From the sequence record MW349129.1: a stretch of 64,000 nucleotides of DNA; one strand, 5' to 3'. The notes under the pieces were generated by a model. It worked only from the letters and a program-made list of their open reading frames with translations, was not told the DNA's origin and searched no databases. Shown in pieces: positions 28,492 to 61,784 of the stretch. A program made the position numbers and the translations under genes. How positions within the stretch are numbered: the stretch's first letter is position 1; every line of letters begins with the position of its first letter.

Positions 28492-28746
28492 GTGGATAAT
28501 AATAATAATGTAAGTAGTAAAATCAATAAAAATCAATTACAAACAGCAATGAATAATATGACTAAAAATATAAATGGTATAAGTAGAAAGATAACAGGAC
28601 AAGATAAAATTGATGAAATTAATAAACTTAAAAGAGAAAATGAAGAATTACATCGTTTTCTCTTTAAGATCTATCAAGATGATGATTTTGATAGAAGAGA
28701 ATTGAAGAAAATTATATTTAAAGATGTAAATAAAAAATTTAAATAA
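28492..28746 (+). CDS. Small coiled-coil protein with C-terminal tag (VNKKFK)
   Basis: SD, GTG start, operon packing. Confidence 0.75.
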   Translation: MDNNNNVSSKINKNQLQTAMNNMTKNINGISRKITGQDKIDEINKLKRENEELHRFLFKIYQDDDFDRRELKKIIFKDVNKKFK

Positions 28747-28748
28747 GG

Positions 28749-28955
28749 GTGATTAATTTGAATTCAGATATCCGAATAGATAGAAGTGGTCTTTATATAC
28801 AATCTAATGAGAAGCAGATGAAGGGGCAAATTAAAATTATAGAAGAGAACAAAAAATTAAAAGATTTTATTATTGGTATTAAAAATAATGGTGGTTATGA
28901 TGAAAAGGAATTAAATAAAATAGTAAATGAAATTGTTAAGGAGAATTTAAAATAA
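28749..28955 (+). CDS. Small protein with C-terminal tag (VKENLK)
   Basis: Tightly packed ORF. Confidence 0.7.
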   Translation: MINLNSDIRIDRSGLYIQSNEKQMKGQIKIIEENKKLKDFIIGIKNNGGYDEKELNKIVNEIVKENLK

Positions 28956-29410
28956 TGTCAAATGAAAAAGTTATTGCTAAAGAATTAACTTTAGATCAAA
29001 AAATTAAAATGTTAGAACCAAAGATAGATGAAGAGACTTATTTAAGACCATTAAGTCAAGTAGATGAATCTTTTTATAATGAGGTTATTAAAGATGAATT
29101 AATTGAGAAAATTAATAATGAAGACCATAAATTTGAAAATAATTTTGATTATCATATATTTAAAAACGGACCAATACAATTACTAGGTTTCATTTATAAA
29201 TTTGAATTTAATGAAAATGCAGTAAACGTTAAAAAAGAAAAACCTAATGAAGGTAATATCTATTTTGGAAGCTTTATATTAAATAATAAAAATAAAAAAG
29301 ATGATTCAATATATTTACTTAGAGTTGATAGCAGCTTAGTTGATTTCAGTATATTAGAAAATAAAAAATATAAAGAATTTGGTAGAAACTTATTTAAATT
29401 AATTAAATAG
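28955..29410 (+). CDS. Hypothetical protein (ends RNLFKLIK)
   Basis: TAATG coupling with the previous gene. Confidence 0.8.
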   Translation: MSNEKVIAKELTLDQKIKMLEPKIDEETYLRPLSQVDESFYNEVIKDELIEKINNEDHKFENNFDYHIFKNGPIQLLGFIYKFEFNENAVNVKKEKPNEGNIYFGSFILNNKNKKDDSIYLLRVDSSLVDFSILENKKYKEFGRNLFKLIK

Positions 29411-29421
29411 GAGTGATATAA

Positions 29422-29700
29422 ATGGATAAAGAAATCGAAGATTTAGCAGGAAAAATAAATAATCTAGAAATTGACCTTAAAGGGATGAATTACAGATTAT
29501 CTAATGATAAACAAGTTATTGATTTTGAAATAAATAAAATTAATGAATATATTAAATTTTTACATGAAGAAAATCAAAGCATCAAAAAAGAAAATATGTT
29601 GTTAAAAGAAGCAATAGTGTCTATTTCTAAACATACAGAATTTAAGAATGATTATATAAATAAATTGTCTAAAGAAATTGTTAAAGAAAATTTTAAATAA
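29422..29700 (+). CDS. Small coiled-coil protein with C-terminal tag (VKENFK)
   Basis: AGGAG SD. Confidence 0.8.
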   Translation: MDKEIEDLAGKINNLEIDLKGMNYRLSNDKQVIDFEINKINEYIKFLHEENQSIKKENMLLKEAIVSISKHTEFKNDYINKLSKEIVKENFK

Positions 29701-29720
29701 TAAAGAGATGTGATTTTATT

Positions 29721-29996
29721 TTGAATAATGAAAAAAGTTTAATTAATCGTATGGAAGAATTAGAAGAACGTACTAGAATGAATGAAATTAAATTAAATAC
29801 TATGAAAGATAATTATCATTATTTAAATGACATTATAGGTACATTAATTAATAGAATAGAAAATTCTAATCAAACTAATGAAAAGAAATTGGATGAAGTA
29901 AGATTAGAATTAGTTCGTCTTTCTAACGAATTAAATTCACATTCTGAAGTAACTAAAAAGTATCTAAAGAATTTTATCAGAGATAATCTTAAGTAA
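29721..29996 (+). CDS. Small coiled-coil protein with C-terminal tag (IRDNLK)
   Basis: ORF within the packed array. Confidence 0.7.
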   Translation: MNNEKSLINRMEELEERTRMNEIKLNTMKDNYHYLNDIIGTLINRIENSNQTNEKKLDEVRLELVRLSNELNSHSEVTKKYLKNFIRDNLK

Positions 29997-30001
29997 AGGG
30001 A

Positions 30002-30283
30002 ATGAAGTGTATGAATGCTATTAAAAGAATAATTGGTTCAGATGAATTTATTAATACTGTAAAGAAAACTATAGCTAGAACTAAGAAAGCAGAAGAGAAA
30101 TTTTATGATTTAAATAATAGAGTTGATAAAGCTTTATCTTTGGCTAATAAAGTTGTTGAAGATAATAAAGAAAAAGAAAGACAAATTAAAGAACTAAAAG
30201 AAGCTTTATCTAAAGAGAAAATTAATAACAGAAGTATAAAATCTCGATATAATAATCTACTATATAAAAATGGGGGAAAATAA
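30002..30283 (+). CDS. Small coiled-coil protein
   Basis: AAAGGG SD; heptad pattern. Confidence 0.75.
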   Translation: MKCMNAIKRIIGSDEFINTVKKTIARTKKAEEKFYDLNNRVDKALSLANKVVEDNKEKERQIKELKEALSKEKINNRSIKSRYNNLLYKNGGK

Positions 30284-30288
30284 TAATT

Positions 30289-30516
30289 ATGAATCCAGAT
30301 ATCAATTTTAATGATAATGGTAAATCTATGGATGAACTATATTCAAGGATACAACTTAGAGCAGCTAAACAAGTAGAAAAAGATATATTGAAAGATAATG
30401 AAGAATATTTTCTAGAAAAAGAAGTAAAAGAACTTAGAGAGCTTGTTTTTGAAGTAGCTAAAAAATATGACGTTAAAGAAATAAAAGATTATTTAGTTAG
30501 AAAAAATATGAAATAA
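30289..30516 (+). CDS. Small protein with C-terminal tag (IKDYLVRKNMK)
   Basis: GGGGGA SD. Confidence 0.8.
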   Translation: MNPDINFNDNGKSMDELYSRIQLRAAKQVEKDILKDNEEYFLEKEVKELRELVFEVAKKYDVKEIKDYLVRKNMK

Positions 30517-30542
30517 AGATTTAAGAAAAGAGTTGAATAAAA

Positions 30543-30734
30543 ATGGCTGAAAACGAACCTGATATTCTTAAAACAATTGAGAAAGTAACCAATGAAATTC
30601 TAGATAAAAATAAAGAATTAAAAAATGAGAATTTGGAACTTAAAGAATTGATATTGGATATTTCTAAAGATCATAATATAGTAGACAAACGTATAACTGA
30701 AATAAAAGTTGATCTAGCAAAAAATATGAGGTAA
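30543..30734 (+). CDS. Small coiled-coil protein with C-terminal tag (LAKNMR)
   Basis: ORF ends at a bidirectional terminator. Confidence 0.75.
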   Translation: MAENEPDILKTIEKVTNEILDKNKELKNENLELKELILDISKDHNIVDKRITEIKVDLAKNMR

Positions 30735-30758: not shown

Positions 30759-30770
30759 ATTATACTGCTT

Positions 30771-34791: not shown

Positions 34792-36729
34792 GTGAATTTG
34801 ATAATGAATGATAATAGAACAATTAAAGTAATTAGAAAAGAAATATTAGATGAGGTACAGGAATCAATTGTAAATGATAGACAATTAGATAAAAAGAAAT
34901 TAACGAAGCTTGGAGAAGAATTAATTGAAAATAGTATTTTTGTTTTGTATACTTCTGATGTTGATATTTATGGAGTAATGTTAATGACTGTAGAAAAGAT
35001 CATTGATATTGAAATTCCAGAACCAACTTTCTCAGTATTTGATGAAGAAAAAGGTTATAAGATTGGTATTAATCCAGTATTATTAGCTACTATGGTTGAT
35101 AAAGATGAAGAAATAGTTTCTATGTTCCTGCATGAAGTTATACATGTAGCTCATGGACATTTAATTGAATTTAGAATGTTAAGAAATAAAGAAGACTCTC
35201 AATTAAAAATGTTAAGTCATTTGGGAATGGATTTATCAGTATTTGAAATTGAAGAGGACTTCCAATTAGGTAAACGTGAAGCTAATACAAGTAAGAAAGT
35301 TTTACCTGAAATTGCACCTAATGTAGATAAGATTGAAAAATATATTCAAGATAGATTTAATAAAACAGATTTTAAATTAAATCATAATGATGCTTCTCAT
35401 TATTATATTAAACAATTAGTAGATATCTACAAAGAGAATAATGAAGAAGATATGTTTGATTCTATGGGTGAATCTATGCAAAATATGATTCAAGAGGCTT
35501 CAGAAAAACAAAATGAACGTGATGAAGATTCATTGAATGAAGAAAACGAAATGTTGAAAGGTATGTTAGAAGATTTAAAAGATATTGAAGATAAAAATGA
35601 TTTATCTAGTAAATTAGAAGATAACAAACTAGAAGAAAATAAAGTTGATGATTTTGAAAATAAAGCTCAAGAGTATATCAATAAATTAGATGAAATGAAT
35701 CAAAATGATGAAGATAACAGTAATGATACTCAAAATCAAAAAGATATAGAAGAGAAAATGAATGATTTACTAGATTTAATGAGAAATAATACTTCAGATA
35801 ATAAATTTAATAATAAAGATAATAGTGATTTATCTGATAAAATACAAGAAATGAAATCAGATATACTAAATCAAATGATTCAGAATAATATGCAACAAGG
35901 TTCTCAAGGTATGCAAGGTGAAGATGGTGGAATGCAAGGAGGACAAAATGTATCTGATATGGGAAGTAATATGACTATGTCATCTTCTTTAGATGGAAAT
36001 TCTAAACATGCAGATAAGTTTGATTCTAATCCTCTTGAAGGAGACGCTACAGAGGAAAGAATGAAAGACCAATTGTACGACTTATTAGAAAGTGCTAGTA
36101 GTAATAGTCGTGGTGACACACCTGCTCATATTAAAGAACAAATTGAAATTCTAAAACGTAAACCTAAGATTAAATGGCAAGATTATCTTAAAGCTAAAGT
36201 AGGTAAAAAACGTTCTTCTAGTACGAAAACTATTCTAAGAAGAAATAGAAGACAACCTTATCGTAGTGATGTACGTGGAACTTTACCTGGTAGAAAATTA
36301 GGTAAAGTATTTGCAGCTATCGATACTTCAGGTTCAATGGGTAGAAATGAGATTGAAGAAATTATTGCTGAATTGTATTATATTAGTAGTGATATGAAAA
36401 TTGATTTAGTTTTATTATTCTTCTCAACTGATGTTGAAGAAGTAGTTGAAGTAACTAGACCAAATCAATTTAATGATTATGTAATGGGTCGTGGTGGAAC
36501 TTACTTCAGTTCTGTATTTAACTTCTTAAATGAAACTGATAACAAACGTAAATATTCAGTATCAAAAGATGATACATTATTATTCTTCTCAGATGGGTTT
36601 GGAGAACCTGAAGTAGAATACGGTGTATTAACTGATGTTGTTTGGGTTATCACTGAAGATGAAAATAATCTTTCAGTCAGAGATCCAAAAGGTAAAGTAT
36701 TGAAATTAGAAGTAGACAATAATAGATAA
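34792..36729 (+). CDS. vWA-domain protein with N-terminal HExxH metallopeptidase-like domain (DUF2201-like)
   Basis: LHEVIHVAHGH; AIDTSGSM MIDAS; GRGGT; FFSDGFG; the true start may be a few codons downstream. Confidence 0.82.
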   Translation: MNLIMNDNRTIKVIRKEILDEVQESIVNDRQLDKKKLTKLGEELIENSIFVLYTSDVDIYGVMLMTVEKIIDIEIPEPTFSVFDEEKGYKIGINPVLLATMVDKDEEIVSMFLHEVIHVAHGHLIEFRMLRNKEDSQLKMLSHLGMDLSVFEIEEDFQLGKREANTSKKVLPEIAPNVDKIEKYIQDRFNKTDFKLNHNDASHYYIKQLVDIYKENNEEDMFDSMGESMQNMIQEASEKQNERDEDSLNEENEMLKGMLEDLKDIEDKNDLSSKLEDNKLEENKVDDFENKAQEYINKLDEMNQNDEDNSNDTQNQKDIEEKMNDLLDLMRNNTSDNKFNNKDNSDLSDKIQEMKSDILNQMIQNNMQQGSQGMQGEDGGMQGGQNVSDMGSNMTMSSSLDGNSKHADKFDSNPLEGDATEERMKDQLYDLLESASSNSRGDTPAHIKEQIEILKRKPKIKWQDYLKAKVGKKRSSSTKTILRRNRRQPYRSDVRGTLPGRKLGKVFAAIDTSGSMGRNEIEEIIAELYYISSDMKIDLVLLFFSTDVEEVVEVTRPNQFNDYVMGRGGTYFSSVFNFLNETDNKRKYSVSKDDTLLFFSDGFGEPEVEYGVLTDVVWVITEDENNLSVRDPKGKVLKLEVDNNR

Positions 36730-36806: not shown

Positions 36807-38876
36807 ATGTTAAAAAAGACTACAGAAAATGAATTAGAAAAGTTATTTAATGTCACTATTTATAATAAAGAATTTTCTAATTTGAAACCTATGTATAATA
36901 GAAAAGATACAGAAACTAGAACTAAATTAAATGATAATCAAAACTCTAGAGTGTATGAGAATTTAATAAATTTCATTAATTATTCTAAAGCAGGAATGAC
37001 TCATATGTTTTTAACTCGTTCTAATAAATATAAAGGTAAATATATTGATTTCCTAAAAAATAGACTTGGTAAAGAAGATTTATTATATAAGAATGAATAT
37101 GACTATACAGATAGATTTTTCAGATCTTTTATATACAATATAGATATAATTAGTAGAAGTGAATATCAAACACATCAATCTATAGAAAATGACTCTAAAT
37201 TAGAAGATTCTTTCTTATTAAGAAATGGAAATTCAAGTATTGACAGTTTTAAAACAGATAATGGATTATCTATAGAATTTTTAGATAAAGATGTAAAGAA
37301 AGATTTCTTAGACAAAAACAAGCAAATTAGTTTAGAATCTTTACTAGCTATTGATACAATGGTATCTAATTCATTAAGAAAGAAATGGATAAAATCAATT
37401 GAACGTGAAGAATTACCTGATATGAATATTATATTTAAAGAAGTTCCAGAAGTTGTAATTATATTAGCTAATAGTATATATGATGGATCAGGCTTCAGAT
37501 TATCACACATAGATAGAAGTGTTATTAATATAAATGAAGATGTTTCAGATGTTTTAAAACCAATATTAACTTTAACATCTAATATCAATTATAAATTAAT
37601 ATTGGATTTAATGAATAAAGATCATTTAGACGAAAAATCAAAACATTTAAAAAATAATGAATTTTGTTTATTTGACGATGATGATATTGATGCCGCATTT
37701 ACTATAATCGGAAATATTAAAAGACAAACAGATCACATTAATAATTTTATAGAAGAAGGTAAATCAGATAATCTAGAAGATAATATTAATTTAATAATTA
37801 AAGAAAATGAAAATGAAGTAGATGATAATTTTGGAGAAATAATAAAAGTTTATATTGATAGAGTATTATCTAAATTTAGAGAATATGTTAAAGATGATAC
37901 CGATATATTAAAAAATTCATCTAAGATTTTAATAGGTGAAGATTTATTTGATTTCCTTATGAAATTAGATGACCTCGAAATTTTGATGGTTAGAAATATA
38001 TACAGAGTTTTAGATAATAATTTATATAATCCTGTAATCAGAGATGTTAGAGAATCAAAAGAAGAAGTTATGAATGAAATAACAGATTATTTTAAAAATA
38101 ACACTAAGAAATTATATTTAGATTTATCTAATATCGATATAAGTAAATTGAAAGATAGTTCTTTTGCATTATTAAATGATTTCATAACAAATGGAGAAGT
38201 AAATAACCTTCGTATGAAGCCTAATGAATTTAATATGGAGTATTTCTATCAATTAAGTATGGGTAAAGAATTAAACCGTGACATATTAAATAGTAATATA
38301 CAATATATGAAGCAAGAATTATTAGAAAATTTTAATGTTGAATCTAAAACAACTTCCAATGCTATTATTGAATTTGATAGCTTTAATATTAATTTTGCTG
38401 TAATAGAAAATAATTCATATAATAATGAAGTAGAAATAATGATGCAAGGAGTTACTTTTAAGAAAAAATTAACTGATGAAGATATTGCTACTATCTTTTT
38501 ATATTCACATAAAGAAGTTAGTATATACCACGACAAAAAATTGGTTATCATGGATAGAAATTATTACTCTAGAAGAGGTATAAATAAATTTATAAATAAT
38601 ATGAATAATATCTTTACTGATTTAGATGGGGAAAGTTTATCTAAATATATGTCTTTAATTTATGATTTGTTATCTTTATCAGATAATTCTCTTGAAGAAA
38701 ATAAAGAAATTTATAATACTTTATATTATAATAAATTTGAATATATTAATGAAGAAAATGAATTAAAAATCGATAGTTATATTAATATAATTAATAATAA
38801 AGATATAACATCTGATTTTAAAAAGAAATTTAAAAAGGTAAGATCTAAGTATTTAGTTTCTAGAATATTTATTTAA
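36807..38876 (+). CDS. Hypothetical protein (689 aa), tag-like end VSRIFI
   Basis: AAAGGAG SD, long ORF. Confidence 0.85.
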   Translation: MLKKTTENELEKLFNVTIYNKEFSNLKPMYNRKDTETRTKLNDNQNSRVYENLINFINYSKAGMTHMFLTRSNKYKGKYIDFLKNRLGKEDLLYKNEYDYTDRFFRSFIYNIDIISRSEYQTHQSIENDSKLEDSFLLRNGNSSIDSFKTDNGLSIEFLDKDVKKDFLDKNKQISLESLLAIDTMVSNSLRKKWIKSIEREELPDMNIIFKEVPEVVIILANSIYDGSGFRLSHIDRSVININEDVSDVLKPILTLTSNINYKLILDLMNKDHLDEKSKHLKNNEFCLFDDDDIDAAFTIIGNIKRQTDHINNFIEEGKSDNLEDNINLIIKENENEVDDNFGEIIKVYIDRVLSKFREYVKDDTDILKNSSKILIGEDLFDFLMKLDDLEILMVRNIYRVLDNNLYNPVIRDVRESKEEVMNEITDYFKNNTKKLYLDLSNIDISKLKDSSFALLNDFITNGEVNNLRMKPNEFNMEYFYQLSMGKELNRDILNSNIQYMKQELLENFNVESKTTSNAIIEFDSFNINFAVIENNSYNNEVEIMMQGVTFKKKLTDEDIATIFLYSHKEVSIYHDKKLVIMDRNYYSRRGINKFINNMNNIFTDLDGESLSKYMSLIYDLLSLSDNSLEENKEIYNTLYYNKFEYINEENELKIDSYINIINNKDITSDFKKKFKKVRSKYLVSRIFI

Positions 38877-38894
38877 ATATATATTATATAATTG
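38875..38894 (+). promoter_or_regulatory. Putative early promoter
   Basis: AAATATATATTAT-ATAATT-G plus hairpin GAGTTGAT/ATCAACTC. Confidence 0.7.
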
Positions 38895-40133: not shown

Positions 40134-40147
40134 AGGAGAATCCACTT

Positions 40148-40861: not shown

Positions 40862-40890
40862 ACTTGAAGTTTAGTGAAGGGAAATTTTGA

Positions 40891-49077: not shown

Positions 49078-49103
49078 AAAAAATTTCTTTCCATTCCCCA
49101 TGA

Positions 49104-49115: not shown

Positions 49116-49143
49116 TTAATAAATAGATATTGGAGAGATAAAA

Positions 49144-50549: not shown

Positions 50550-50708
50550 GATATGATCTCTATAAGATCTCTTTGGACAGTAGAAGCAAATAAAGAAGCT
50601 AATAAACTTCTTAATAAGAAAACTAACTATCTAAACTACACTGGTAATTCAGTACGTAATTTGGGTAATGAGAGTGTACAAGCTTTATACTCTTTAACTA
50701 AAGAATAA
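50550..50708 (+). CDS. rpoC: RNA polymerase beta-prime subunit, exon 2
   Basis: DMISIRSLWTVEANKEA..ESVQALYSLTKE*; completes GADFDGD; spliced protein is 503 aa; absent from the ORF track. Confidence 0.88.
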   Translation, partial: DMISIRSLWTVEANKEANKLLNKKTNYLNYTGNSVRNLGNESVQALYSLTKE

Positions 50709-51209: not shown

Positions 51210-51229
51210 AAATATATATTATAAAAATA
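51210..51229 (+). promoter_or_regulatory. Putative early promoter
   Basis: AAATATATATTAT-AAAAAT-A. Confidence 0.65.
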
Positions 51230-51308: not shown

Positions 51309-51791
51309 ATGATATATTACAAAAATAAAGTAAATAATGAAATATATGAAGTTAATAATATTCATAGAAAGGATGATGCTTTTTATTATGTGTTTGGTAA
51401 TGAATTTAAAAAAGAAAGAATGGAATTATATGAATCAGTGGGTAAAAAAATTGATTTATTTGATAAAGATAAAGGACATAAAGAATTAAACTTCCAATTA
51501 AATTATGACTCATCTAGATTATTTTTAGTTACACATATGAAATATGATAATAATAATCCTTTTGCACCTAAAGTAGTAGATTTAAAGAATCAAAATCTTG
51601 TCTCATCTGATTCTTCAGAAGATCTTTACTATATATTATATAAAAGAATGTGTAATGCAATAGATATACCTTTATTAAATTATAATATATTATTAAAAGA
51701 ATTTAATTTTGATAATGAAGACATATTTAAAATAATACCAGAAGATTGTAAAGAAGTAAAAGATTTTAAAATTAGAAATCTTTTTAAATAA
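51309..51791 (+). CDS. Tag-family protein (paralog of 52519-53010)
   Basis: MIYYKNKVNNEIYEV...IRNLFK. Confidence 0.85.
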   Translation: MIYYKNKVNNEIYEVNNIHRKDDAFYYVFGNEFKKERMELYESVGKKIDLFDKDKGHKELNFQLNYDSSRLFLVTHMKYDNNNPFAPKVVDLKNQNLVSSDSSEDLYYILYKRMCNAIDIPLLNYNILLKEFNFDNEDIFKIIPEDCKEVKDFKIRNLFK

Positions 51792-51806
51792 AAGGAGAAA
51801 TTTTAA

Positions 51807-52508
51807 ATGGAAAATATTAAATTGTATAAAAATCTAGAAAATGGTAATAAATTTACTTTATCTAAAGATGAAATTAATAATGGTAGATTTCTTTATAAAG
51901 TCATGAAACAAATAAAAAGTAATTTTTACCCATATTATAATTATGAAGACCAACCCATTACAACCAATGGAAACTCTTATTTAATTAATGAACAAATGAA
52001 TTTTCATTTTTATACACATTCAGATATTATTATAAATTTTAAAAATTTAATTGGAGTAGACGAAGATATAATAATTAAAATTAATGAAAATAAAGAAAGA
52101 AATAATTCAGCTTCAATTGTTTGTTTCTCTGATTCCAATACAGATAATGATGGAATTTATGAAAATATATTTCAAATTGTTTTAAATACAAAAAAGGCTA
52201 AGAAAATAAATCGTATGCTAAATAAATATGAAAGTGATAAATATAAAATATCTTCTCATACAATGGATAAAAATGAAGTAAATTTTAAAGTCAAATTTAA
52301 ACAAGATTATTTGTCTGATAAGAATAATGACGTTTATGATTCTCTAGATGAATTGATATATTATATATTAAAGGACCTTAGAATTAAGATCGACAATTCG
52401 TATATGTATTTTATGGATTATCTAAGATGGAATTTGGAATTTATTGCTGAAGAAATTACTGATGAGGAAGAAATTAAAAAATACTTAATTAAAGAAAAAT
52501 TTAAATAA
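51807..52508 (+). CDS. Tag-family protein
   Basis: Ends EEITDEEEIKKYLIKEKFK. Confidence 0.85.
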   Translation: MENIKLYKNLENGNKFTLSKDEINNGRFLYKVMKQIKSNFYPYYNYEDQPITTNGNSYLINEQMNFHFYTHSDIIINFKNLIGVDEDIIIKINENKERNNSASIVCFSDSNTDNDGIYENIFQIVLNTKKAKKINRMLNKYESDKYKISSHTMDKNEVNFKVKFKQDYLSDKNNDVYDSLDELIYYILKDLRIKIDNSYMYFMDYLRWNLEFIAEEITDEEEIKKYLIKEKFK

Positions 52509-52518
52509 GGAAGTGTAA

Positions 52519-53010
52519 ATGGATATGATATATTACAAAAATAAAGTAAATGGTGAAATATATGAAGTTAATAATATTCATAGAAAAGATGATGCATTTT
52601 ATTATGTATTCAATAATGAATTTAAAAAAGAGAATTCGTCTTTTTATAAATCTTATGGTAAAAAGATTGATTTATATGATGAAGACGTAGGAAGTATAAA
52701 ATTGGAGTTTTTCTTAATTTATGATTTTATTAATCTTCATTTAACTACACACTTTTCTTGGGATTTTAATAATATTCCTTTTATACCTAAAAATATAGAA
52801 TTAACAAATCAAAATCTTGTCATATCAGACTCTTCAATTGATCTTTATTATTTATTCTATAAAAGAATATGTGATGTGATAGATATAAATATGGCACATT
52901 ATAATATTCCATTAGGAAAATTTAATTTTGATAATGGAGATATATTTGAAATAATATCAGAAGATTGCAAAGAAGTAAAAGATCTTAAAGTTAGAAATCA
53001 TTTTAGATAA
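52519..53010 (+). CDS. Tag-family protein (paralog of 51309-51791)
   Basis: MIYYKNKVNGEIYEV...VRNHFR. Confidence 0.85.
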   Translation: MDMIYYKNKVNGEIYEVNNIHRKDDAFYYVFNNEFKKENSSFYKSYGKKIDLYDEDVGSIKLEFFLIYDFINLHLTTHFSWDFNNIPFIPKNIELTNQNLVISDSSIDLYYLFYKRICDVIDINMAHYNIPLGKFNFDNGDIFEIISEDCKEVKDLKVRNHFR

Positions 53011-53015
53011 GGAGA

Positions 53016-53201
53016 TTGATAAATATGAGAAAAGAAATTAGAAAAAATGAAAGTAAACAATTGACTTTACAAGAAAAATGGGAAATTGATGCAGAATTAT
53101 ACAGAGAGAAAAATAAAGACAAGAAAAAAATAAAAGGGCCAATTATAGGAAAGAAAGTTTCTAAAGAAGAAATGGAAAGAATCTTAAAAGGAGAAGAATA
53201 A
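53016..53201 (+). CDS. Small charged protein, no tag
   Basis: AAGGAG SD. Confidence 0.7.
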   Translation: MINMRKEIRKNESKQLTLQEKWEIDAELYREKNKDKKKIKGPIIGKKVSKEEMERILKGEE

Positions 53202-53202
53202 A

Positions 53203-53856
53203 ATGTTTAATCACAATATCTTACTATATAAACCTATTAGCATTGATTATAATGATTTTATTGAGTTAAACAAAGAAAAATATAAAAATGATAGAGAATA
53301 TATTAAAATGATAAATGTATTTAACTTAATGGAACTGTTAAAAATAGACTCTTTTAAAGATAAAACTTTCTTTGAAACTGAATGTAAATTAAAATTAAGA
53401 GGTTATGATGAATATAAAAATATAAAAGTGGTTTACAATCAATCATTAGACAGTGATCCAATATTCTCTAATTTAAAAAACTTTAATGCAGAATTAGATA
53501 TTATAAGTAAAGAAAGAGATAATACTTATATGACTGAAGAATTATTATATGAATACAATATGATGAAAATGAGCACATGTATAAATGATAAAGCTAACAC
53601 TATTACAATTAAAATAAAAAATTTCATTAATTCAAATAAAGAAAATTTTAATAACGATTTTGAATTCCTTATTAAAGAATTTGAAAATAATTTATTAAAG
53701 AATTTAACAGACCTCCATAAATATGAAGACTTACAACTTCTAATTAATAATGAATATCACAGTTTAAAAGATATTAGTGTATATAATGAAAAAATATTTA
53801 GACCTGCTACTGATAAAGAGTTTAAGAATTATTTAGTTAAAAAAGGATTTAGATGA
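53203..53856 (+). CDS. Tag-family protein
   Basis: Ends TDKEFKNYLVKKGFR. Confidence 0.85.
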   Translation: MFNHNILLYKPISIDYNDFIELNKEKYKNDREYIKMINVFNLMELLKIDSFKDKTFFETECKLKLRGYDEYKNIKVVYNQSLDSDPIFSNLKNFNAELDIISKERDNTYMTEELLYEYNMMKMSTCINDKANTITIKIKNFINSNKENFNNDFEFLIKEFENNLLKNLTDLHKYEDLQLLINNEYHSLKDISVYNEKIFRPATDKEFKNYLVKKGFR

Positions 53857-53867
53857 AAATATGTATT

Positions 53868-53887
53868 AAATATATATTATAAAAATG
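53868..53887 (+). promoter_or_regulatory. Putative early promoter
   Basis: AAATATATATTAT-AAAAAT-G; perfect 14-bp hairpin at 53887-53917. Confidence 0.75.
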
Positions 53888-53949
53888 AGATAATGAATTA
53901 ATATAATTCATTATCTCTATATTAATTTAATTAGGAGAGTGAAAAAGAT

Positions 53950-54558
53950 ATGGATTTAAAAGAGAATAAATTTTATTATAATAAAGATATTAATGAGCTT
54001 TTTATAATTGGTAAGGATGAAAGTGATATTAACGATAAGATAAATAAATTCTATTATAAAAAATTATTAGAAAAAAATTTAGATTATCATGGTTTAATTA
54101 ATAATCTTTATTATAATAGAAATATAAATTTTGATTTAATGGATGATGACGATATATATTTTAGTAATATGTATAATGGAATTAGAGAATATATTAAGGT
54201 GAGTTATGTAGAATTTTCATGTACAAATTTTGAAGATAATGAAGTAATATTACAGTTAGATACTTTTATTGATAAAAGCAATGATAAAAATCTTTTAGAA
54301 GTTCATAAAAATTCGCATGGTGTTACCATAACAATGGTAAAAGGTTTTTATGAAAAAGATCTTATAAATTATAATGAATACAAAAATATTTTAGACAAAT
54401 TATCTGGTCTGTTTGACACAATGCTTAAAGAAGAAAATGATGGAAATATTAAAATCTTTATAAATGATATTGATATATTTGAACCTTATGCATATTTTAG
54501 AGAGTTAGAAGACGAAAGAGGAATTAAAAATATTTTGGTTAAGAAAAATTTTATATAA
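53950..54558 (+). CDS. Tag-family protein
   Basis: Ends ELEDERGIKNILVKKNFI. Confidence 0.85.
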   Translation: MDLKENKFYYNKDINELFIIGKDESDINDKINKFYYKKLLEKNLDYHGLINNLYYNRNINFDLMDDDDIYFSNMYNGIREYIKVSYVEFSCTNFEDNEVILQLDTFIDKSNDKNLLEVHKNSHGVTITMVKGFYEKDLINYNEYKNILDKLSGLFDTMLKEENDGNIKIFINDIDIFEPYAYFRELEDERGIKNILVKKNFI

Positions 54559-54572
54559 AGGAGATAGATATA

Positions 54573-55193
54573 ATGGATGTAAATGAATATATAAATAATC
54601 ATGATTTTTATAGAGTTGGGAATGACGGTCAAGTATTTGTATTTAATAAAGATATATCAAAAGATGAATTAAATTCTAAAATATTTTCTAAATTATTTGC
54701 ATGCGAAAATATAGGAATTTTATTGTCTGAATATGGTTATTATGTAATAGATGAATATAATGTATTCTTAAGAAATAATGATAAAATATTATTAGTTGAA
54801 AATATGACTATTGATCTAAGTTTAATTAAAGATGATCTAATTGAATTAAATTTTACATTAATTATTAAATCTAGTCTTCCTTCAAAAATTGGCCCTTTTG
54901 AAAAAGATAATCATGATCCTTTTTATTATTATAATACTATTATTCAAATAGAAAATAAAGATAACTTTCAACATGAATTAATTTCTCATATAACAAATCA
55001 TTTTAATAAAATGAGCGATGTTGATTTAATGCTTTTAACTACTAAAAATGAAATTAAATTTAATAAAGATTATAGCGTTAATAAAAAATGTATTGATTTT
55101 AAATGTAATTTTAATGAAATTTATAAAATACTTAATAAATTAGAAGATGAAAAAGAAATTAAAAAATATCTAACTAAAGAAAATTTTAAATAA
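54573..55193 (+). CDS. Tag-family protein
   Basis: Ends LEDEKEIKKYLTKENFK. Confidence 0.85.
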   Translation: MDVNEYINNHDFYRVGNDGQVFVFNKDISKDELNSKIFSKLFACENIGILLSEYGYYVIDEYNVFLRNNDKILLVENMTIDLSLIKDDLIELNFTLIIKSSLPSKIGPFEKDNHDPFYYYNTIIQIENKDNFQHELISHITNHFNKMSDVDLMLLTTKNEIKFNKDYSVNKKCIDFKCNFNEIYKILNKLEDEKEIKKYLTKENFK

Positions 55194-55206
55194 GGATGAA
55201 ATAAAT

Positions 55207-55770
55207 ATGAATTTAGATAATATTGTAATATTAAAAAAGAAAAATGATGGTGAATTTGACAATAACAAATTTATAGAATTTAATCATAATAATATTAATA
55301 ATGATGAAATATTAAGTCTTTCTTTAATTACTCTATATACAAGCGTGTATGCATTTTATATAAAAAGTGATATGAAATATGACAATTTTGTTAGTTATTT
55401 AGCTAATTTTTATTTAGAAATAGATGGGTATTTAAAAGGACCTTTAAATATAACACATGATGAAAATAATAGAATGCTTATAATTTATAAAGGAAGACTA
55501 CCACAAGATATTTTCAAAGTTAGAGAATTTAACGTAAATACTAAATTATATGCGTATTTAATTAAAGGTGATAATTACGATACGGTAGAAGATGATCTAA
55601 TCAAATCAGTAATCAATGGATCAGAATATATAATAAACAGTGAAAGAATTAAACCAAAAATTATTATCAATGGATTATATAAGGATATTACAAATGTATT
55701 AAATTATTTTGAAAAACTTACCGATGAAAGAGAAATTAAAAATTACTTAGTTCAGAAAGGATTTATATAA
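55207..55770 (+). CDS. Tag-family protein
   Basis: Ends LTDEREIKNYLVQKGFI. Confidence 0.85.
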   Translation: MNLDNIVILKKKNDGEFDNNKFIEFNHNNINNDEILSLSLITLYTSVYAFYIKSDMKYDNFVSYLANFYLEIDGYLKGPLNITHDENNRMLIIYKGRLPQDIFKVREFNVNTKLYAYLIKGDNYDTVEDDLIKSVINGSEYIINSERIKPKIIINGLYKDITNVLNYFEKLTDEREIKNYLVQKGFI

Positions 55771-55787
55771 AATAAGGAGGATTAAAA

Positions 55788-56411
55788 TTGGATAAGACAT
55801 TATATGTATCAGATATATTAGATGAAAAAATTATAGGAAGAAAGGATCTTAATAAAGATGAACTTTTTGATTTGTCATTTAATACAATTTTAAATAATTC
55901 TGATGACAATAGATTTAATAAAGAAGGATTTAGTTTAATGTTAACGTTTTCAAAAGGATTAATTTTAAAATTTGATTATACAGACAAATATTTTTATGTG
56001 AAAGATTTTATATTTTTAATAGAAAAAGTTGATGGCAACTATGAATTTAATTTTACATTAAGTATTCCAGAATTTACAGACAGTAAAATTGAAATTGGAT
56101 TAGGAATTTTTGAATCTGAAAAAGGTCATAGAGAATTTTATTTTAATGATTTTTCTTGTTATAAAGAAGGAAAAACTTTATTAGAAAGAGCTAAAGAATA
56201 TTTAACGGATGATATTTTTAATAATTATGGATTAAGTATCAATATTTTTACATTGAAAAATAAAAATAGAATTTTGTCAGATTATGATTTTGTCATAAAT
56301 AATAATGATATAGATGAGATTTACAGTTTAAAAAATATAGACAAATTATTTAAAGAAGTAACAAATGAGAAAGAAATTAAAAACTATTTAACTAAAGAAA
56401 ATTTTAAGTAG
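55788..56411 (+). CDS. Tag-family protein
   Basis: Ends EVTNEKEIKNYLTKENFK; TTG start behind AAGGAGG. Confidence 0.85.
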   Translation: MDKTLYVSDILDEKIIGRKDLNKDELFDLSFNTILNNSDDNRFNKEGFSLMLTFSKGLILKFDYTDKYFYVKDFIFLIEKVDGNYEFNFTLSIPEFTDSKIEIGLGIFESEKGHREFYFNDFSCYKEGKTLLERAKEYLTDDIFNNYGLSINIFTLKNKNRILSDYDFVINNNDIDEIYSLKNIDKLFKEVTNEKEIKNYLTKENFK

Positions 56412-56456
56412 AGTGAAGTAAAAATAATTATTTAATTCAGAAAGGGTTTAGTTAAT

Positions 56457-57059
56457 ATGGAAATGAATTTAGATTCTTATGAATATTATTATAATGATGA
56501 TGAAAAAGTTTTAGCTAAAACACCAGTTGATATATCAAAAGAAACTACTAATAAAAAGATTTCAATTGAATACTATAAAAATATATTTAAAAAAGATTTT
56601 TATCTGTTTCGTAAACAAATTATTGGAACTCATGTAATATTCGACAGTGATTCTTTGCATAAAATAATTAATAAGAGTGATGGAACATCTGTACCAGGAT
56701 TTAATTTATTATTAGATTTTGAAGTTCTTAGTGTTTCAAGAGAAATTATCTTGAAACTAAGTTTTTCAATTAATGATTCTAAATTCTTTAAAACATTTGA
56801 TAAAAGTAAAGATATTTTAGAATTTTCAAAAATGAGTTCTATATATTACGATCATGTAGAGGATAACCTTGAAGATAAAATGGCATATTTATTAGCTAAA
56901 CTATTCTTTGATATGCATGTGAATGAGAATGAAGATATCGAAATTTATTTAGAGGATAAATTTAATGAAATGTTAGATATATCTAAACCGTATAAATACT
57001 TTAGATTGTTAAATGAAAAAGAAGTTAAAAAACACTTAACAAGAGAAGGATTTAAATAA
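56457..57059 (+). CDS. Tag-family protein
   Basis: Ends LNEKEVKKHLTREGFK. Confidence 0.85.
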   Translation: MEMNLDSYEYYYNDDEKVLAKTPVDISKETTNKKISIEYYKNIFKKDFYLFRKQIIGTHVIFDSDSLHKIINKSDGTSVPGFNLLLDFEVLSVSREIILKLSFSINDSKFFKTFDKSKDILEFSKMSSIYYDHVEDNLEDKMAYLLAKLFFDMHVNENEDIEIYLEDKFNEMLDISKPYKYFRLLNEKEVKKHLTREGFK

Positions 57060-57130
57060 ACATTTTTAATGAATTTAATTAACTTTCTTTTATATTAATA
57101 AATATAATGAAAGAGAGTTGAATAAGATAA

Positions 57131-57910
57131 ATGTCTGAAACTAATGAAATTGATTTAATATCACAAATCAATGATATGATGGATGAGTATAAAATGTTAG
57201 TTAAATTTAAAGATAAAATGGAAAATAAAGAAATTCAATTAGAAAATCGTATACAGGATTTAACTAAGAATCTGAAATATCCTAAACATACATTCGTATC
57301 TAATATGGAAGCTAATATTATCAGTGTAGAAAAAGAAATTAAAGATACTATTATGCAAATGAAAAATGTTAAAAAAGATATTATTGACTTAACTATGAAA
57401 GCTCAGAAAATGGCTGAAGATGATGAATCTGAAGATAATTACAAAACTCTTGCTAAAAATGTACTTAATGAGCTTAATAATATGTCTAATAAAGATATTC
57501 TAAACAGTATGATGGAACCTGAAGAAGTAAATGATGAAGATACTGATTTTAGTGAAGAATTGGATGCGAAATTATCACAATTAGATGAAGAAGAGAAATC
57601 TATTAATAAAGAAGTAGATCAAAAAGAAGAATTAAGCGAAGAAATTAATGAACTAGACCAACAAGATTTATCTTCTATATTAAAAGTCTATAAAGGCACA
57701 TTACAATTCTTTGTTATAGGAGATTCTCCTGAAGAATATGAATTAGTAGTTGCTGATATGGATATGAATATTATTGAAGAAGATGAAATGAAAGATGAAT
57801 ACCCAGAGTTATTTACTATGACTAGAGATCTATTATTTGAAGATGTTGAAGGTAATGATGAAATAGTTACAGATGATTTTGGAAATATTTATCAAAAAGC
57901 AGAATTTTAA
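57131..57910 (+). CDS. Acidic coiled-coil protein
   Basis: 259 aa, heptad N-terminal half, D/E-rich C-terminal half. Confidence 0.85.
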   Translation: MSETNEIDLISQINDMMDEYKMLVKFKDKMENKEIQLENRIQDLTKNLKYPKHTFVSNMEANIISVEKEIKDTIMQMKNVKKDIIDLTMKAQKMAEDDESEDNYKTLAKNVLNELNNMSNKDILNSMMEPEEVNDEDTDFSEELDAKLSQLDEEEKSINKEVDQKEELSEEINELDQQDLSSILKVYKGTLQFFVIGDSPEEYELVVADMDMNIIEEDEMKDEYPELFTMTRDLLFEDVEGNDEIVTDDFGNIYQKAEF

Positions 57911-57920
57911 ATTATTTTAC

Positions 57921-57951
57921 CCCATAATATATTAATACAATATATTATGGG
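57921..57951 (+). terminator. Stem-loop/terminator
   Basis: CCCATAATATATT / AATATATTATGGG. Confidence 0.7.
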
Positions 57952-57980
57952 TATTTATTATATAGGAGAGTGAAATAGAT

Positions 57981-58106
57981 ATGTTAAAAAGATTATACAA
58001 TTTATTAACTAAGAAAAAATTTGAAAAGAGATTATACGACTTTAGATTTAATTATCAAGATCATGAACATCTAAATCAAGTTCATAGAGATTCAAATAAT
58101 ATATAA
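57981..58106 (+). CDS. 41-aa microprotein missing from the ORF track
   Basis: AGGAG SD; MLKRLYNLLTKKKFEKRLYDFRFNYQDHEHLNQVHRDSNNI*. Confidence 0.6.
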   Translation: MLKRLYNLLTKKKFEKRLYDFRFNYQDHEHLNQVHRDSNNI

Positions 58107-58125
58107 TATGAAAGGATGATTATTA

Positions 58126-58527
58126 ATGTTATCAGAATATAGATTAAATTCAAGTAAAGAAAATATTAAACAGCTATTAAGAGATTATGGTTTTAAAAAG
58201 GACTCTTATACTAAAGCTTTATTATATAGAAAACGTGTAACTGATCCAAATGATATTTTATTCATAGTAGCTGAAGTAGTTATTGAAACTAATTCAGATC
58301 TAGTTAAATTAAATTACTATGATAGTAAACATAATAGATTTAATCCTTCTAATGAATCACCAGAAGTTCAAAAGGGATTAAGTATATTAGAAGATATGAA
58401 AGAAAAAGAATTATTAATTGAACCAGAATTAACTCGAAATGAAGAAGAAAAAGAAGTTCTTGATAAACTTAAAAAACAACGTGAAGAAATGGAAAATGGT
58501 CAAGTATCACCCAATTCTGAAAATTAG
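58126..58527 (+). CDS. Hypothetical protein
   Basis: GAAAGGA SD. Confidence 0.8.
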   Translation: MLSEYRLNSSKENIKQLLRDYGFKKDSYTKALLYRKRVTDPNDILFIVAEVVIETNSDLVKLNYYDSKHNRFNPSNESPEVQKGLSILEDMKEKELLIEPELTRNEEEKEVLDKLKKQREEMENGQVSPNSEN

Positions 58528-58530
58528 AAT

Positions 58531-58550
58531 AAATATATATTATAAAAATG
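58531..58550 (+). promoter_or_regulatory. Putative early promoter
   Basis: AAATATATATTAT-AAAAAT-G plus hairpin ATCCCAATACTA/TAGTATTGGGAT. Confidence 0.75.
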
Positions 58551-58595
58551 TTATCCCAATACTATTAAATTAGTATTGGGATTATTATACTAAAA

Positions 58596-59414
58596 TTGGA
58601 GATGAAATGGATAATGACAAAATATTTTATAGATAAAGAGAAAGATGAATTAATTGAAATTGATAGGAATTATCTTAACCGATATGAATATATTGCATAT
58701 GTATTAACTACTATGGATATTAATAATCTTTTAAGTAGTAAAGGATATGCTAAATCTTTCATAGATAATATTTCTAAAGAAGAAGATTATATGAATTTTC
58801 ATTATAAAGAAATTGATAATGATATTTATTTTATAGACAAACATAATAAAAATGATGCTCTTAAAAGATTTAATACTAATTTTCATATTAATTTTAATAC
58901 TAGTAGAATGGATAAAATTGAAAGTGGAGAATTTAAATTAGATTTTTATTTTGAAAATTCATTATATAAAAAATATTTCAATGTAATTACTAATGGTTTA
59001 GTAAATAAAAATAATTTAGTTAATGAAGGAATAAATGAAAAAACGAGAGCTTTTATACATGTTAAATCATTTGAAAAAGGTTTATATGATATCAAATATA
59101 GTAATGAATTATTTACGGACGTAAATTTTCCAATACCTGCATTTGAGAAAAATCCTATTATTAAATTTATAGAAGATTTTAAGGATTTATTCTTTATCAT
59201 ATTATATCAGAATAATCTTAGTGTATTAATGTCTCTTTATGAGATTAAATATATGTATAAAGATGATATAGAATTTTATATTAGTTTCTCCAGTAAGGGT
59301 GGCGGTTTAATTAATTTATTAGATCTAATAGAAAGTGATGAAAATGATTTATTTAAAGAAATTAAAACCGAAAAAGAAATGAAAGCTTTTAAAGTTAGAA
59401 AAGGATTCAAATAA
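58596..59414 (+). CDS. Tag-family protein
   Basis: Ends FKEIKTEKEMKAFKVRKGFK; the start may be a few codons downstream. Confidence 0.8.
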   Translation: MEMKWIMTKYFIDKEKDELIEIDRNYLNRYEYIAYVLTTMDINNLLSSKGYAKSFIDNISKEEDYMNFHYKEIDNDIYFIDKHNKNDALKRFNTNFHINFNTSRMDKIESGEFKLDFYFENSLYKKYFNVITNGLVNKNNLVNEGINEKTRAFIHVKSFEKGLYDIKYSNELFTDVNFPIPAFEKNPIIKFIEDFKDLFFIILYQNNLSVLMSLYEIKYMYKDDIEFYISFSSKGGGLINLLDLIESDENDLFKEIKTEKEMKAFKVRKGFK

Positions 59415-59435
59415 TATAAAGAAAGGATTTTCATA

Positions 59436-60176
59436 ATGGAATACAATAATTATTATAGATATAAATTAGATGGAAAAATACTTCACTTTGATATGGATAG
59501 AACTGATTTACGTAGAGATAAATTGGCTGAAATATTTACTAAAGTTAAGATGGAATATATTTATAAAGATGAAAAAATGATTAAAGAACCAAGAAACTTT
59601 ATTTACCGATCTAATCTTTCTTTAGAGTATTCTCATTTTAAAGATAAGGTATGTGAAATCAGACAAATTTCTAAAATAATGGGTAAAAACTATTTAAAAG
59701 ATTTATTAATTTACGATACAGATATTAGTTTAAGTTTTAATTCTATTTTAGATGGAGCTATATTTAAAAAAGATTTTCCAGAAGGATCTTTTCATGACAA
59801 AATAGAAAGTAATATGAATAGAAAATATTTAATTTTAAGTGATAATATAAGTCATACTAGTGAAAATTTTGTTGATTTAAATGATAAAGATTATATTTTA
59901 AATTTTGAAGAAGTAGAATTGCTGATCAAAGAATTTAATAGAACTCTTTTAAATTATCTTATGGATTTAATGAGCTATGGAGATTTAAAATTAAATGTTA
60001 GGAAATCAGATTTAGCATATTTTATGACAGGAATATATACAAAAATGGAAGAACACGAAGATAAATTATTCCCTATATTTGATTATAAATTTTTACTTAA
60101 TGAATCTGGATTATTTGAAGAGATTACAGATGAGAAAGTTATTAAAGAATATTTAGTGAAAAATAATTTTAAATAA
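59436..60176 (+). CDS. Tag-family protein
   Basis: Ends FEEITDEKVIKEYLVKNNFK. Confidence 0.85.
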   Translation: MEYNNYYRYKLDGKILHFDMDRTDLRRDKLAEIFTKVKMEYIYKDEKMIKEPRNFIYRSNLSLEYSHFKDKVCEIRQISKIMGKNYLKDLLIYDTDISLSFNSILDGAIFKKDFPEGSFHDKIESNMNRKYLILSDNISHTSENFVDLNDKDYILNFEEVELLIKEFNRTLLNYLMDLMSYGDLKLNVRKSDLAYFMTGIYTKMEEHEDKLFPIFDYKFLLNESGLFEEITDEKVIKEYLVKNNFK

Positions 60177-60192
60177 AAGGAGAAATAATATA

Positions 60193-60972
60193 ATGAGTAT
60201 AAATAAAAGTTATACAAAATATTTTTTAAGCAAAATGACAGACGAATTATTTTCAGTCACTAATTTATCCAGATATGGTATAAATGAAGATCATTTATAT
60301 CTACCTTATTTACTTCCTAACTTACAAATAAAAAGTGAAGAAATAACTATATCGTCTGAAGAGATTGTTGATAAAGGTGGCAATGGAAAGAATTTATATT
60401 CAGGAACTATATCAATTGGATATATTTTCCCAATTATCAAATATAGTGTTAATAATAAAAATTCAATGAATATGCTTATTATTGATTTTGATATTATTTT
60501 CAACGAAGAAATAGAAAATGAAAACTATTTAAAAGTTAAAATTGAAAGCCCATATGATTCAGATATAAATTCAATATTTTTTAATAACGTTATTGGTAAT
60601 ATATTAGACGAATCCAATTCTTTAAAAATACCTTTTAGATTGCATATAAATAGTATGGAAGACTTAATATCAGATTTTAATAATAGTAAAGAAAATAATT
60701 TTAAAAATAATAAAGATTTATATCAAATATTAGTTAAAGTGAATAGTTCTATATTGGAAATTTTATCACAAATTAGAGATCATTTTAATATAGAATTCTT
60801 TGTTTCAGATTCCTGTTTCTCACATATACCAATAATTGATAAGAGAAATAATAAGGATATGGATGATAAATATTATAATTTATTTGATGAGTATAGAATA
60901 TCTGGTGTATTTGAAGAAATTACGGATGAAAGAGTCATTAAAAAATACTTAGTGAAAAATAATTTTAAATAA
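60193..60972 (+). CDS. Tag-family protein
   Basis: Ends FEEITDERVIKKYLVKNNFK. Confidence 0.85.
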   Translation: MSINKSYTKYFLSKMTDELFSVTNLSRYGINEDHLYLPYLLPNLQIKSEEITISSEEIVDKGGNGKNLYSGTISIGYIFPIIKYSVNNKNSMNMLIIDFDIIFNEEIENENYLKVKIESPYDSDINSIFFNNVIGNILDESNSLKIPFRLHINSMEDLISDFNNSKENNFKNNKDLYQILVKVNSSILEILSQIRDHFNIEFFVSDSCFSHIPIIDKRNNKDMDDKYYNLFDEYRISGVFEEITDERVIKKYLVKNNFK

Positions 60973-60986
60973 AGGAGATCAATATA

Positions 60987-61784
60987 ATGAGTGCAATTAA
61001 AAGTGATAAAAAGTATTTCTTATGTAAAATAAATGATGAATTATTTGAAGTTGATAATAAAAATAATAGATGGCCATTTTTATATGATTATTTACCTTTA
61101 ATAATAGCTGAAAAAATAATTAATTCAGATGAAAAAGACTCATATGAAACTAGTGCATTAGATGTGCATTATAAAAAAGAAGATAATGTGATTACAGGAA
61201 ATTTAAGATTTTTATCAAGATGTTTACCTCCTGTCCTTTACAATGTTAATGATAAAAATTCATTTGAAACAATTATAACTCTTGCAGATTTTAAGTTTAA
61301 AAGAGATATCACTAAATCTCCATTTAGCATAGATAAGAATAGTGCTATTGACAAAATACTATTTACAATGGAACCTATACAAAATGAAATTGATGCAGCT
61401 TTATTTAATAGTATTATAAAAGATATTTTAAACGAAGAAGATGAAATAGAATTAGAAAGATTTATATTAGTTGATAATATTGAAAAATTATTAAATGAAA
61501 TTCAAGAACAGAATATAAAACATCATGATGAATTTAGAGGTTTAATTTCAGATATATTCAATAATTATCTTAATATATTAAAATCATTAAGACATCATTT
61601 TAATATTGAATTTTTCTTTGCTAAAACTTCTTTTTTAGATATGCTAAATATCTATGATTATGATGCCATTATTAATGATAGCTATAAAATAAATATTTTT
61701 GAAGGCGATTTAGATGTTATATTTGAAGAGATTACGGATGAGAAAGTTATTAAAAAATACTTAGTGAAAAATAATTTTAAATAA
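60987..61784 (+). CDS. Tag-family protein
   Basis: Ends FEEITDEKVIKKYLVKNNFK. Confidence 0.85.
   Translation: MSAIKSDKKYFLCKINDELFEVDNKNNRWPFLYDYLPLIIAEKIINSDEKDSYETSALDVHYKKEDNVITGNLRFLSRCLPPVLYNVNDKNSFETIITLADFKFKRDITKSPFSIDKNSAIDKILFTMEPIQNEIDAALFNSIIKDILNEEDEIELERFILVDNIEKLLNEIQEQNIKHHDEFRGLISDIFNNYLNILKSLRHHFNIEFFFAKTSFLDMLNIYDYDAIINDSYKINIFEGDLDVIFEEITDEKVIKKYLVKNNFK

Follow-up and report, generated by a model that had tools for sequence, protein, structure and literature searches.

Within a 64,000-nucleotide stretch of the genome of Staphylococcus phage Madawaska (MW349129.1, bases 62001-126000; 25.5% G+C; hereafter the window), we analysed a set of plus-strand genes whose protein products share a C-terminal ending. 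Madawaska, a jumbo phage of the AR9/PBS1-like kind, has a genome of 265 kb and is reported to contain uracil-DNA, and every gene that bears the ending is annotated as "hypothetical protein". Between window positions 28492 and 61784, 24 of the 40 gene-like plus-strand open reading frames (ORFs) that we counted end in [ILVMT]xxx[FLM][KRI], with F at position -2 in 20 of the 24, which reproduces exactly the two counts given in the initial annotation of this DNA. These carriers form arrays at 28492-30734, 40891-42254 and 51309-61784. They are listed here with their scores against an 18-residue profile hidden Markov model (HMM) of the ending, the tag HMM, and with the ends of their orthologues in the related phage SA1.

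28492-28746, plus strand: small helical carrier, 84 residues; helix longer by three residues, end KKFK (SA1 orthologue KKFI)
28749-28955 (annotated start 28758), plus strand: small helical carrier, 68 residues; end IVKENLK (SA1 orthologue IVKDNFK)
29422-29700, plus strand: small coiled-coil-like carrier, 92 residues; end IVKENFK, terminal tag HMM match of 15.8 bits; related to 30543
29721-29996, plus strand: weak carrier, 91 residues; end IRDNLK, loose motif only (SA1 orthologue KDNLN)
30289-30516, plus strand: small helical carrier, 75 residues; strong tag YLVRKNMK, 26.9 bits, conserved in SA1
30543-30734, plus strand: weak carrier, 63 residues; end LAKNMR, loose motif only (SA1 AKNKR)
36807-38876, plus strand: large protein, 689 residues; tag-like tail YLVSRIFI, loose motif, conserved in SA1; no family match
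38952-40133, plus strand: 393-residue protein; tag-like tail ETVKKTFI, loose motif, identical in SA1
40891-41550, plus strand: carrier, 219 residues; terminal tag HMM match of 21.8 bits
41610-42254, plus strand: carrier, 214 residues; 22.0 bits
44879-45454, plus strand: carrier, 191 residues, directly 3' of the split DNA polymerase gene; 20.3 bits
51309-51791, plus strand: carrier, 160 residues, paralogue of 52519; tag HMM match, and match to the N-terminal HMM of the 58596-61784 group at E 5e-9
51807-52508, plus strand: carrier, 233 residues; 22.1 bits
52519-53010, plus strand: carrier, 163 residues; tag HMM match, and match to the N-terminal HMM of the 58596-61784 group at E 3e-10
53203-53856, plus strand: carrier, 217 residues; 26.4 bits
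53950-54558, plus strand: carrier, 202 residues; 24.3 bits
54573-55193, plus strand: carrier, 206 residues; 27.1 bits; related to 55788 over 124 residues
55207-55770, plus strand: carrier, 187 residues; 29.0 bits
55788-56411, plus strand: carrier, 207 residues; 26.8 bits; last 84 residues tied to 60987 by BLASTP
56457-57059, plus strand: carrier, 200 residues; 24.1 bits
58596-59414 (annotated start 58614), plus strand: carrier, 272 residues; 21.3 bits; hhalign 79% to the tag-less core of 60193
59436-60176, plus strand: carrier, 246 residues; 26.9 bits
60193-60972, plus strand: carrier, 259 residues; 28.9 bits; full-length paralogue of 60987
60987-61784, plus strand: carrier, 265 residues, the modelled member (AlphaFold2)

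The shared ending is far more frequent than composition predicts. Against a shuffled, composition-matched null, the comparison proposed with the initial annotation, the 24 loose matches stand beside a mean of 0.53 and a maximum of 4 in 2000 shuffles of the last 20 residues of each protein, and the strict form of the motif occurs 17 times where 0.012 are expected. Random internal hexamers used as a second null gave 0.38 loose and 0 strict matches, and the strict motif was found inside proteins at 2 of 19,027 positions. We reject chance and composition as explanations, since both nulls fall far below the observed counts. The tag HMM assigns 15-29 bits to 18 window proteins, and in 125 proteins drawn from the window and from record bases 1-50 kb it has no internal match above 7 bits; all matches that exceed 8 bits reach the final residue of the protein, which bears out the claim that the tag is always terminal. 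The enzymes and tail proteins of the window lack the motif, and our ORF check thereby agrees with what had been said of those that are recognisable. Six of the 24 carriers are weaker than the rest: 28492 and 28749 have a module whose helix is three residues (one extra turn) longer, and 29721, 30543, 36807 and 38952 resemble the others over the last six or so residues only, the tails of the 689-residue (36807) and 393-residue (38952) proteins being conserved in SA1. Elsewhere in the window, a 64-residue ORF at 4990-5184 has a tag-like end, E-E-V-Q-Y-L-L-D-E-S-F-K, with the same hydrophobic spacing, and falls below the tag HMM listing.

Position-specific information reaches about 16-18 residues back from the C-terminus and defines a module that begins with a short beta-strand (F-x-E-I), continues as an N-capped helix (T-D-E-K-E-I-K-x-Y-L-V-K) and closes with N/G-F-K/R/I, positions -6 to -1 reading V-K-x-N-F-K. 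A Schellman C-cap classically has N or G with a hydrophobic residue next to it, and D/T-x-x-E is an N-cap; by this pattern, the N/G and hydrophobic residue at the end of the module would form a Schellman-type C-cap. The helix has a mean hydrophobic moment of 0.29, compared with 0.30 in shuffles, and a mean hydrophobicity of -0.44, so that the short amphipathic helix originally proposed is not what we find, and an amphipathic membrane helix is rejected for a helix this hydrophilic; no carrier contains a membrane-span-like segment. Net charge averages +1.7 in the tag and -8.7 in the remainder of the protein, and the carriers as a whole have isoelectric points (pI) of 4.7-6.0: the module is a basic tip on acidic proteins.

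Conservation of the module is found at the level of protein. Identical residues in pairs of tags use the same codon in 781 of 1069 cases, near the 750 expected from codon usage and in keeping with the earlier remark that codons vary, and the sole common element in the DNA 3' of the stop codon is the ribosome binding site; with the codons free and the downstream DNA unshared, the signal therefore lies in the protein, and we reject a DNA-level explanation. Tag codons are almost identical in the adjacent genes 59436, 60193 and 60987 (same codon at 40 of 50 sites, 32.6 expected). The Machias, AH12, PB50 and SA1 counterparts have retained the tag, and across orthologue pairs the tag is 74% and the body 56% identical, with the tag the higher of the two in 25 of 31 pairs. 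Most carriers are 25-50% identical to their best Machias and AH12 counterparts, as is 44879 (25-28% to the ORFs of similar length that match it best in the two loci), and for five the figure rises to 69-88% with one or both of these phages; conserved non-carrier neighbours are 76-92% identical to theirs. The carriers are the fastest-evolving part of the genome.

Tandem arrays of carriers occupy three regions of the Madawaska genome. Beyond the window, seven tandem genes at record positions 17.6-23.9 kb have this ending, as do about nine genes at 226-263 kb (array at about 253-263 kb). In the structural and replication regions, a strict back-translated DNA pattern had no occurrence at the ends of coding sequences, and the ORF translations of two stretches of hypothetical genes there contained no tag. 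Counted piecewise, and therefore approximately, the 275 or so genes of the genome include about 30 carriers by robust and about 40 by loose criteria. In these Staphylococcus jumbo phages, carriers make up one gene in every seven to nine. The gene at record 261052-261501 (35052-35501 of locus L005) is paralogous to two tagged genes, at 35520 and 36013 of L005, with which it has the start M-x-Y-Y-K-L in common; its end is decayed, T-E-K-E-Y-K being kept and the terminal cap and F-K lost.

The family is limited to ten Staphylococcus jumbo phages and a few metagenomic contigs. A 35-residue tag query against 50,697 phage records returned these ten phages only, and when 1.84 billion representative proteins were searched exhaustively with a profile, nine matches were significant, all at the extreme C-terminus and all from the same phages or from contigs. 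A search with alignment A2 detected no relative in IMG/VR or in 185,579 species genomes (GTDB), and one near-identical contig in the JGI metagenomes. The Listeria relative LPJP1 has four untagged genes in the slot that separates its virion RNA polymerase beta-prime gene from the gene for an SMC-like virion protein; the same slot in Madawaska holds about twenty genes, of which thirteen are carriers. The survey of relatives suggested by the initial annotation thus places the tag in all ten Staphylococcus jumbo phages and not in the LPJP1 slot. Within the Madawaska carrier array, the gene at 57131-57910 is an acidic (pI 4.1), well-conserved non-carrier with weak collinear similarity (E 0.003) to the first LPJP1 gene after the RNA polymerase gene (19531-20340 of locus L013), a likeness that suggests that carriers may have been inserted around an older backbone.

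Much of the carrier set lies behind promoters of an early type. The AR9 early promoter consensus has been experimentally defined (PMC5312081), and we searched for it as ATATATATTAT-N6-R, accepting exact matches only. The window contains 8 such motifs where 0.86 are expected, at 26964 (minus strand), 33099, 38877, 45516, 50787, 51212, 53870 and 58533, and all 8 are intergenic and co-oriented with the genes downstream. Four of them stand before operons that contain carriers.

38877-38894, plus strand: AR9-type early promoter motif, 5' of operon 38952-42254
51212-51229, plus strand: early promoter motif, 5' of operon 51309-53856
53870-53887, plus strand: early promoter motif, 5' of operon 53950-57910
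58533-58550, plus strand: early promoter motif, 5' of operon 58596-61784

These exact motifs make the four operons early-type, and the observation that most carriers lie downstream of early-type promoters is upheld for the carrier operons from 38952 onward; the small-protein cluster (28492-30734) and 44879 have no exact early promoter motif. At 53870-53917, 57921-57951 and 58533-58582, strong, G+C-poor hairpins with stems of 12-14 bp have an exact or near-exact early promoter motif directly next to them or within them, and with the promoter at the hairpin, the next early transcript would therefore begin with the terminator of the preceding operon. The early-gene primer used for reverse transcription quantitative PCR in the SA1 paper has no match in the phage loci compared; of the 97 early genes of SA1, 90 have no known function. 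The virion proteome reported for phage DC4 is shallow, and none of its 15 proteins is evidently a carrier. The DC4 virion protein UFVDC4_00019 (91 residues, pI 10.2) was considered as a carrier and rejected; its inferred map position and its length make it the probable orthologue of 42310-42606, a basic gene on the minus strand.

The carrier bodies were compared by iterative HMM searches on tag-less cores (last 20-22 residues removed), by all-against-all hhalign of 52 families (1326 pairs), by group-level hhalign and by a comparison of alignments A8 and A9. Sequence links were obtained between 58596 and 60193 (hhalign 79%), between 54573 and 55788, and between 55788 and 60987 over 84 residues, and an HMM of the N-terminal 32 residues of the 58596-61784 group matches 51309 and 52519 at E 1e-9 to 1e-10, all 22 of its 22 matches being carriers. 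An AlphaFold2 model of 60987 built on a 22-sequence alignment (mean predicted local distance difference test (pLDDT) 75.9, predicted template modelling score (pTM) 0.80) has, in order, an N-terminal hairpin, a helix, a beta-meander, long helices, a strand at 246-249 and the tag helix at 252-263. Confidence holds at pLDDT 83-85 across residues 231-260, and the strand runs straight into the helix with no linker, so that the picture of a detachable tag finds no sign of a flexible joint in this model; the module is continuous with a confidently predicted strand and helix. Foldseek comparison of the model with the PDB gave no fold match (best E 0.13, template modelling (TM) score below 0.2), and comparison with BFVD gave five matches only, all apparent Staphylococcus jumbo-phage proteins, among them a 206-residue protein matched at 15% identity, TM 0.50 and E 1e-4, which from its accession numbering and length is probably a carrier of the group of about 200 residues. 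Carriers have no match, or borderline matches only, in PHROGs, NCBIfam and PADLOC, and none in PDB sequence searches.

We interpret the module as the conserved end of one clade-specific, tandemly expanded and fast-diverging family of acidic, for the most part early proteins, likely serving as a shared interaction surface, and we assign this interpretation a probability of roughly 0.55. Most carriers look like one architecture, and we infer the common descent of all of them. The initial description of otherwise dissimilar proteins remains accurate in that the bodies have no detectable similarity, and is overstated in view of the tandem arrays, the common size and acidity, the N-terminal hairpin motif present in two groups and the fold match at 15% identity. 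Repeated duplication in three arrays would have produced the roughly 30-40 copies per genome, expansions of similar size having jumbo-phage precedent (PMC7824862). The bodies would then have diverged past sequence recognition while purifying selection kept the terminal module, and a few short helical proteins may retain or share the strand-helix end alone. A docking or oligomerisation role for the module is plausible: it might dock variable acidic bodies on one phage or host partner, or join family members together, and the variable bodies could supply different specificities in host takeover or counter-defence.

Several results weigh against this interpretation. The tag-less cores are mostly unlinked by iterative HMM and profile-profile comparison, the median hhalign probability between them being 0.2%, equal to that of carrier and non-carrier pairs. 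One structure model (60987) is confident; a second, of 51309, built from a mixed-paralogue alignment, is poor (pTM 0.42, low confidence), and it has the same element order, its BFVD search being uninformative. Carriers also fall into at least three classes of size and shape with the module or a tag-like tail, namely small helical proteins, alpha/beta proteins of about 150-290 residues, and the proteins of 393 or 689 residues; the helical proteins of 63-92 residues and the two large proteins cannot share a fold of about 200-270 residues, yet they carry the module or a similar tail. The proteins of 28492-30734 lie outside the 60987 fold because they are too short.

The live rivals of an expanded family with a functional end are a portable address label and a purely structural cap. 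In the first, a docking peptide would have been acquired independently by unrelated proteins, for example through exchange of gene 3' ends, and would bring many cargos to one receptor. We regard this as possible but unlikely. Bodies without detectable similarity, the occurrence of the module on at least three classes of size and shape, and its invariably terminal position and stronger conservation than the bodies speak for such a label; the double capping would suit an autonomously stable helix, and the near-identical tag codons in 59436, 60193 and 60987 hint at local exchange. Against it stand the 60987 model, with neither a linker nor a drop in confidence ahead of the module, the N-terminal motif co-conserved with the tag in two groups, the fold match across groups, and the uniformity of carriers in size, acidity and array organisation. 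Moreover, the all-pairs comparison revealed none of the DNA-level conservation that would promote exchange of 3' ends, and none of the carriers can be recognised as an enzyme or a known domain. The first proposal, a system that addresses unrelated proteins, is retained in part: the enrichment, the strictly terminal place and the conservation as protein stand, to call the proteins unrelated goes too far, the helix is not amphipathic, and addressing is a putative function.

The second rival accepts the same family and makes the module a folding nucleus or stabilising cap, kept for stability alone. The conserved positions can be read as helix-capping features (N-cap D/T-x-x-E, Schellman C-cap N/G, hydrophobic F), the module has the highest predicted confidence within the fold, and its helix lacks the amphipathicity of a surface docking helix. 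However, the lysines and glutamates of the helix are also conserved across groups with fully diverged cores, the module occurs on small helical proteins in which the large domain is missing, and to find so basic a tip on proteins that are strongly acidic points to a surface with a function; we consider a role in stability alone doubtful, on a par with the portable label.

Membrane targeting by an amphipathic helix, degradation through a C-terminal degron and binding of the sliding clamp are together very improbable roles for the module. Terminal peptides with each of these functions exist in bacteria and phages, and the module is terminal, lysine-rich and equipped with a conserved aromatic residue. 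Membrane-targeting helices of the MinD/FtsA type have a high hydrophobic moment and a non-polar face; the moment of the module is at the level of shuffles and its helix hydrophilic, however, and it is predicted to be structured and not disordered. An ssrA-like degron is a disordered tail with small non-polar residues last, and the carriers instead end in F-[KRI]; the sliding-clamp-binding motif is a Q-L-x-L-F-like penta- or hexapeptide, and the consensus contains no conserved Q and no L-x-L-F. We give next to no weight to an artefact of composition or to a signal in the nucleic acid, be it a terminator, a recombination site or translational coupling, for in spite of a very A+T-rich genome of 25% G+C in which K, N, F and I codons dominate, synonymous variation matches codon usage, DNA conservation ends at the ribosome binding site, composition-matched shuffles give 0.5 matches where 24 are observed, and the tag is kept in orthologues with 25-50% body identity.

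Known systems resemble the proposed family in part. Bacillus phage G contains a zinc-ribbon family of about 35 copies that arose by lineage-specific expansion (Iyer et al. 2021, PMC7824862). As in that family, the carriers are dozens of paralogues in one jumbo-phage lineage and a narrow clade, with unknown or regulatory function; unlike the zinc ribbons, to which they are unrelated in sequence, they have no metal-binding or other known domain, and a terminal module of about 18-30 residues is all that can be recognised while the bodies lie past profile detection. In the poxvirus ankyrin/PRANC (F-box-like) families, a C-terminal helical motif docks variable bodies on one host hub. The carriers may be compared with these large, fast-evolving multigene arrays of variable bodies and a short, conserved helical C-terminus, but the likeness is one of architecture only, as the poxvirus proteins use the eukaryotic ubiquitin machinery and have no sequence or fold relation to the carriers. 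Encapsulin cargo-loading peptides and the T4 capsid-targeting sequence, which address unrelated cargos to one shell, are likewise short and terminal; the former have flexible, poorly conserved linkers and the latter is N-terminal and cleaved, whereas the carrier module is structured and contiguous with the fold, the carrier operons have promoters of the early type, and no carrier is evident among the 15 DC4 virion proteins. The clamp-binding tails of T4 gp43, gp33 and gp55 and the ClpX-binding tail of SspB, by which different proteins bind one hub, are also short C-terminal peptides, but they are disordered and hydrophobic, while the carrier module is a capped, charged helix with another consensus.

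We found no prior description of the shared ending: the comparative-genomics account of these phages, the DC4 and SA1 papers and a broad jumbo-phage survey contain no mention of the motif, in agreement with the initial annotation, whose author knew of none. A simple terminal profile offers an annotation handle for carriers that are now "hypothetical", and recognition of the family yields a concrete hypothesis of one conserved basic helix and many variable acidic bodies. Most carriers lie behind early promoters, where host-takeover and counter-defence functions are expected. No uracil-DNA glycosylase inhibitor can be identified in these Staphylococcus phages with uracil-DNA, an absence that the literature calls a paradox (PMC10303552), and acidic early carriers are therefore natural candidates as DNA mimics. 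We speculate that the module might act as a phage-specific C-terminal docking code, its capped basic helix allowing some 30-40 early proteins with different bodies, small helical ones among them, to plug into one phage or host hub or to co-assemble into one early-infection structure, as a counterpart in bacterial viruses of the poxvirus PRANC or encapsulin cargo systems, and that some acidic bodies could be DNA mimics, including a uracil-DNA glycosylase inhibitor; we hold this as a tentative proposal with the odds against it. A shared docking role, should the module prove to have one, would make this the first such system of its size in a phage.

Additional features of the genome emerged in the course of the analysis. 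The gene for the DNA polymerase catalytic subunit (42735-44855) is intron-split, as is that for the virion RNA polymerase beta-prime subunit (47725-50708), inside which lies a homing endonuclease ORF (49144-50280). Two adjacent giant ORFs on the minus strand, 13268-19159 and 19183-25161 (1963 and 1992 residues), have a 66-residue stretch in common at 94% identity and weaker similarity elsewhere, as if the two giant proteins were paralogues between which a segment had recently been exchanged. At record 11835-13376, three tandem non-carrier paralogues (180, 155 and 158 residues), aligned by hhalign at 97-99% across their first 75 or so residues, are a second, smaller expansion in the early region.

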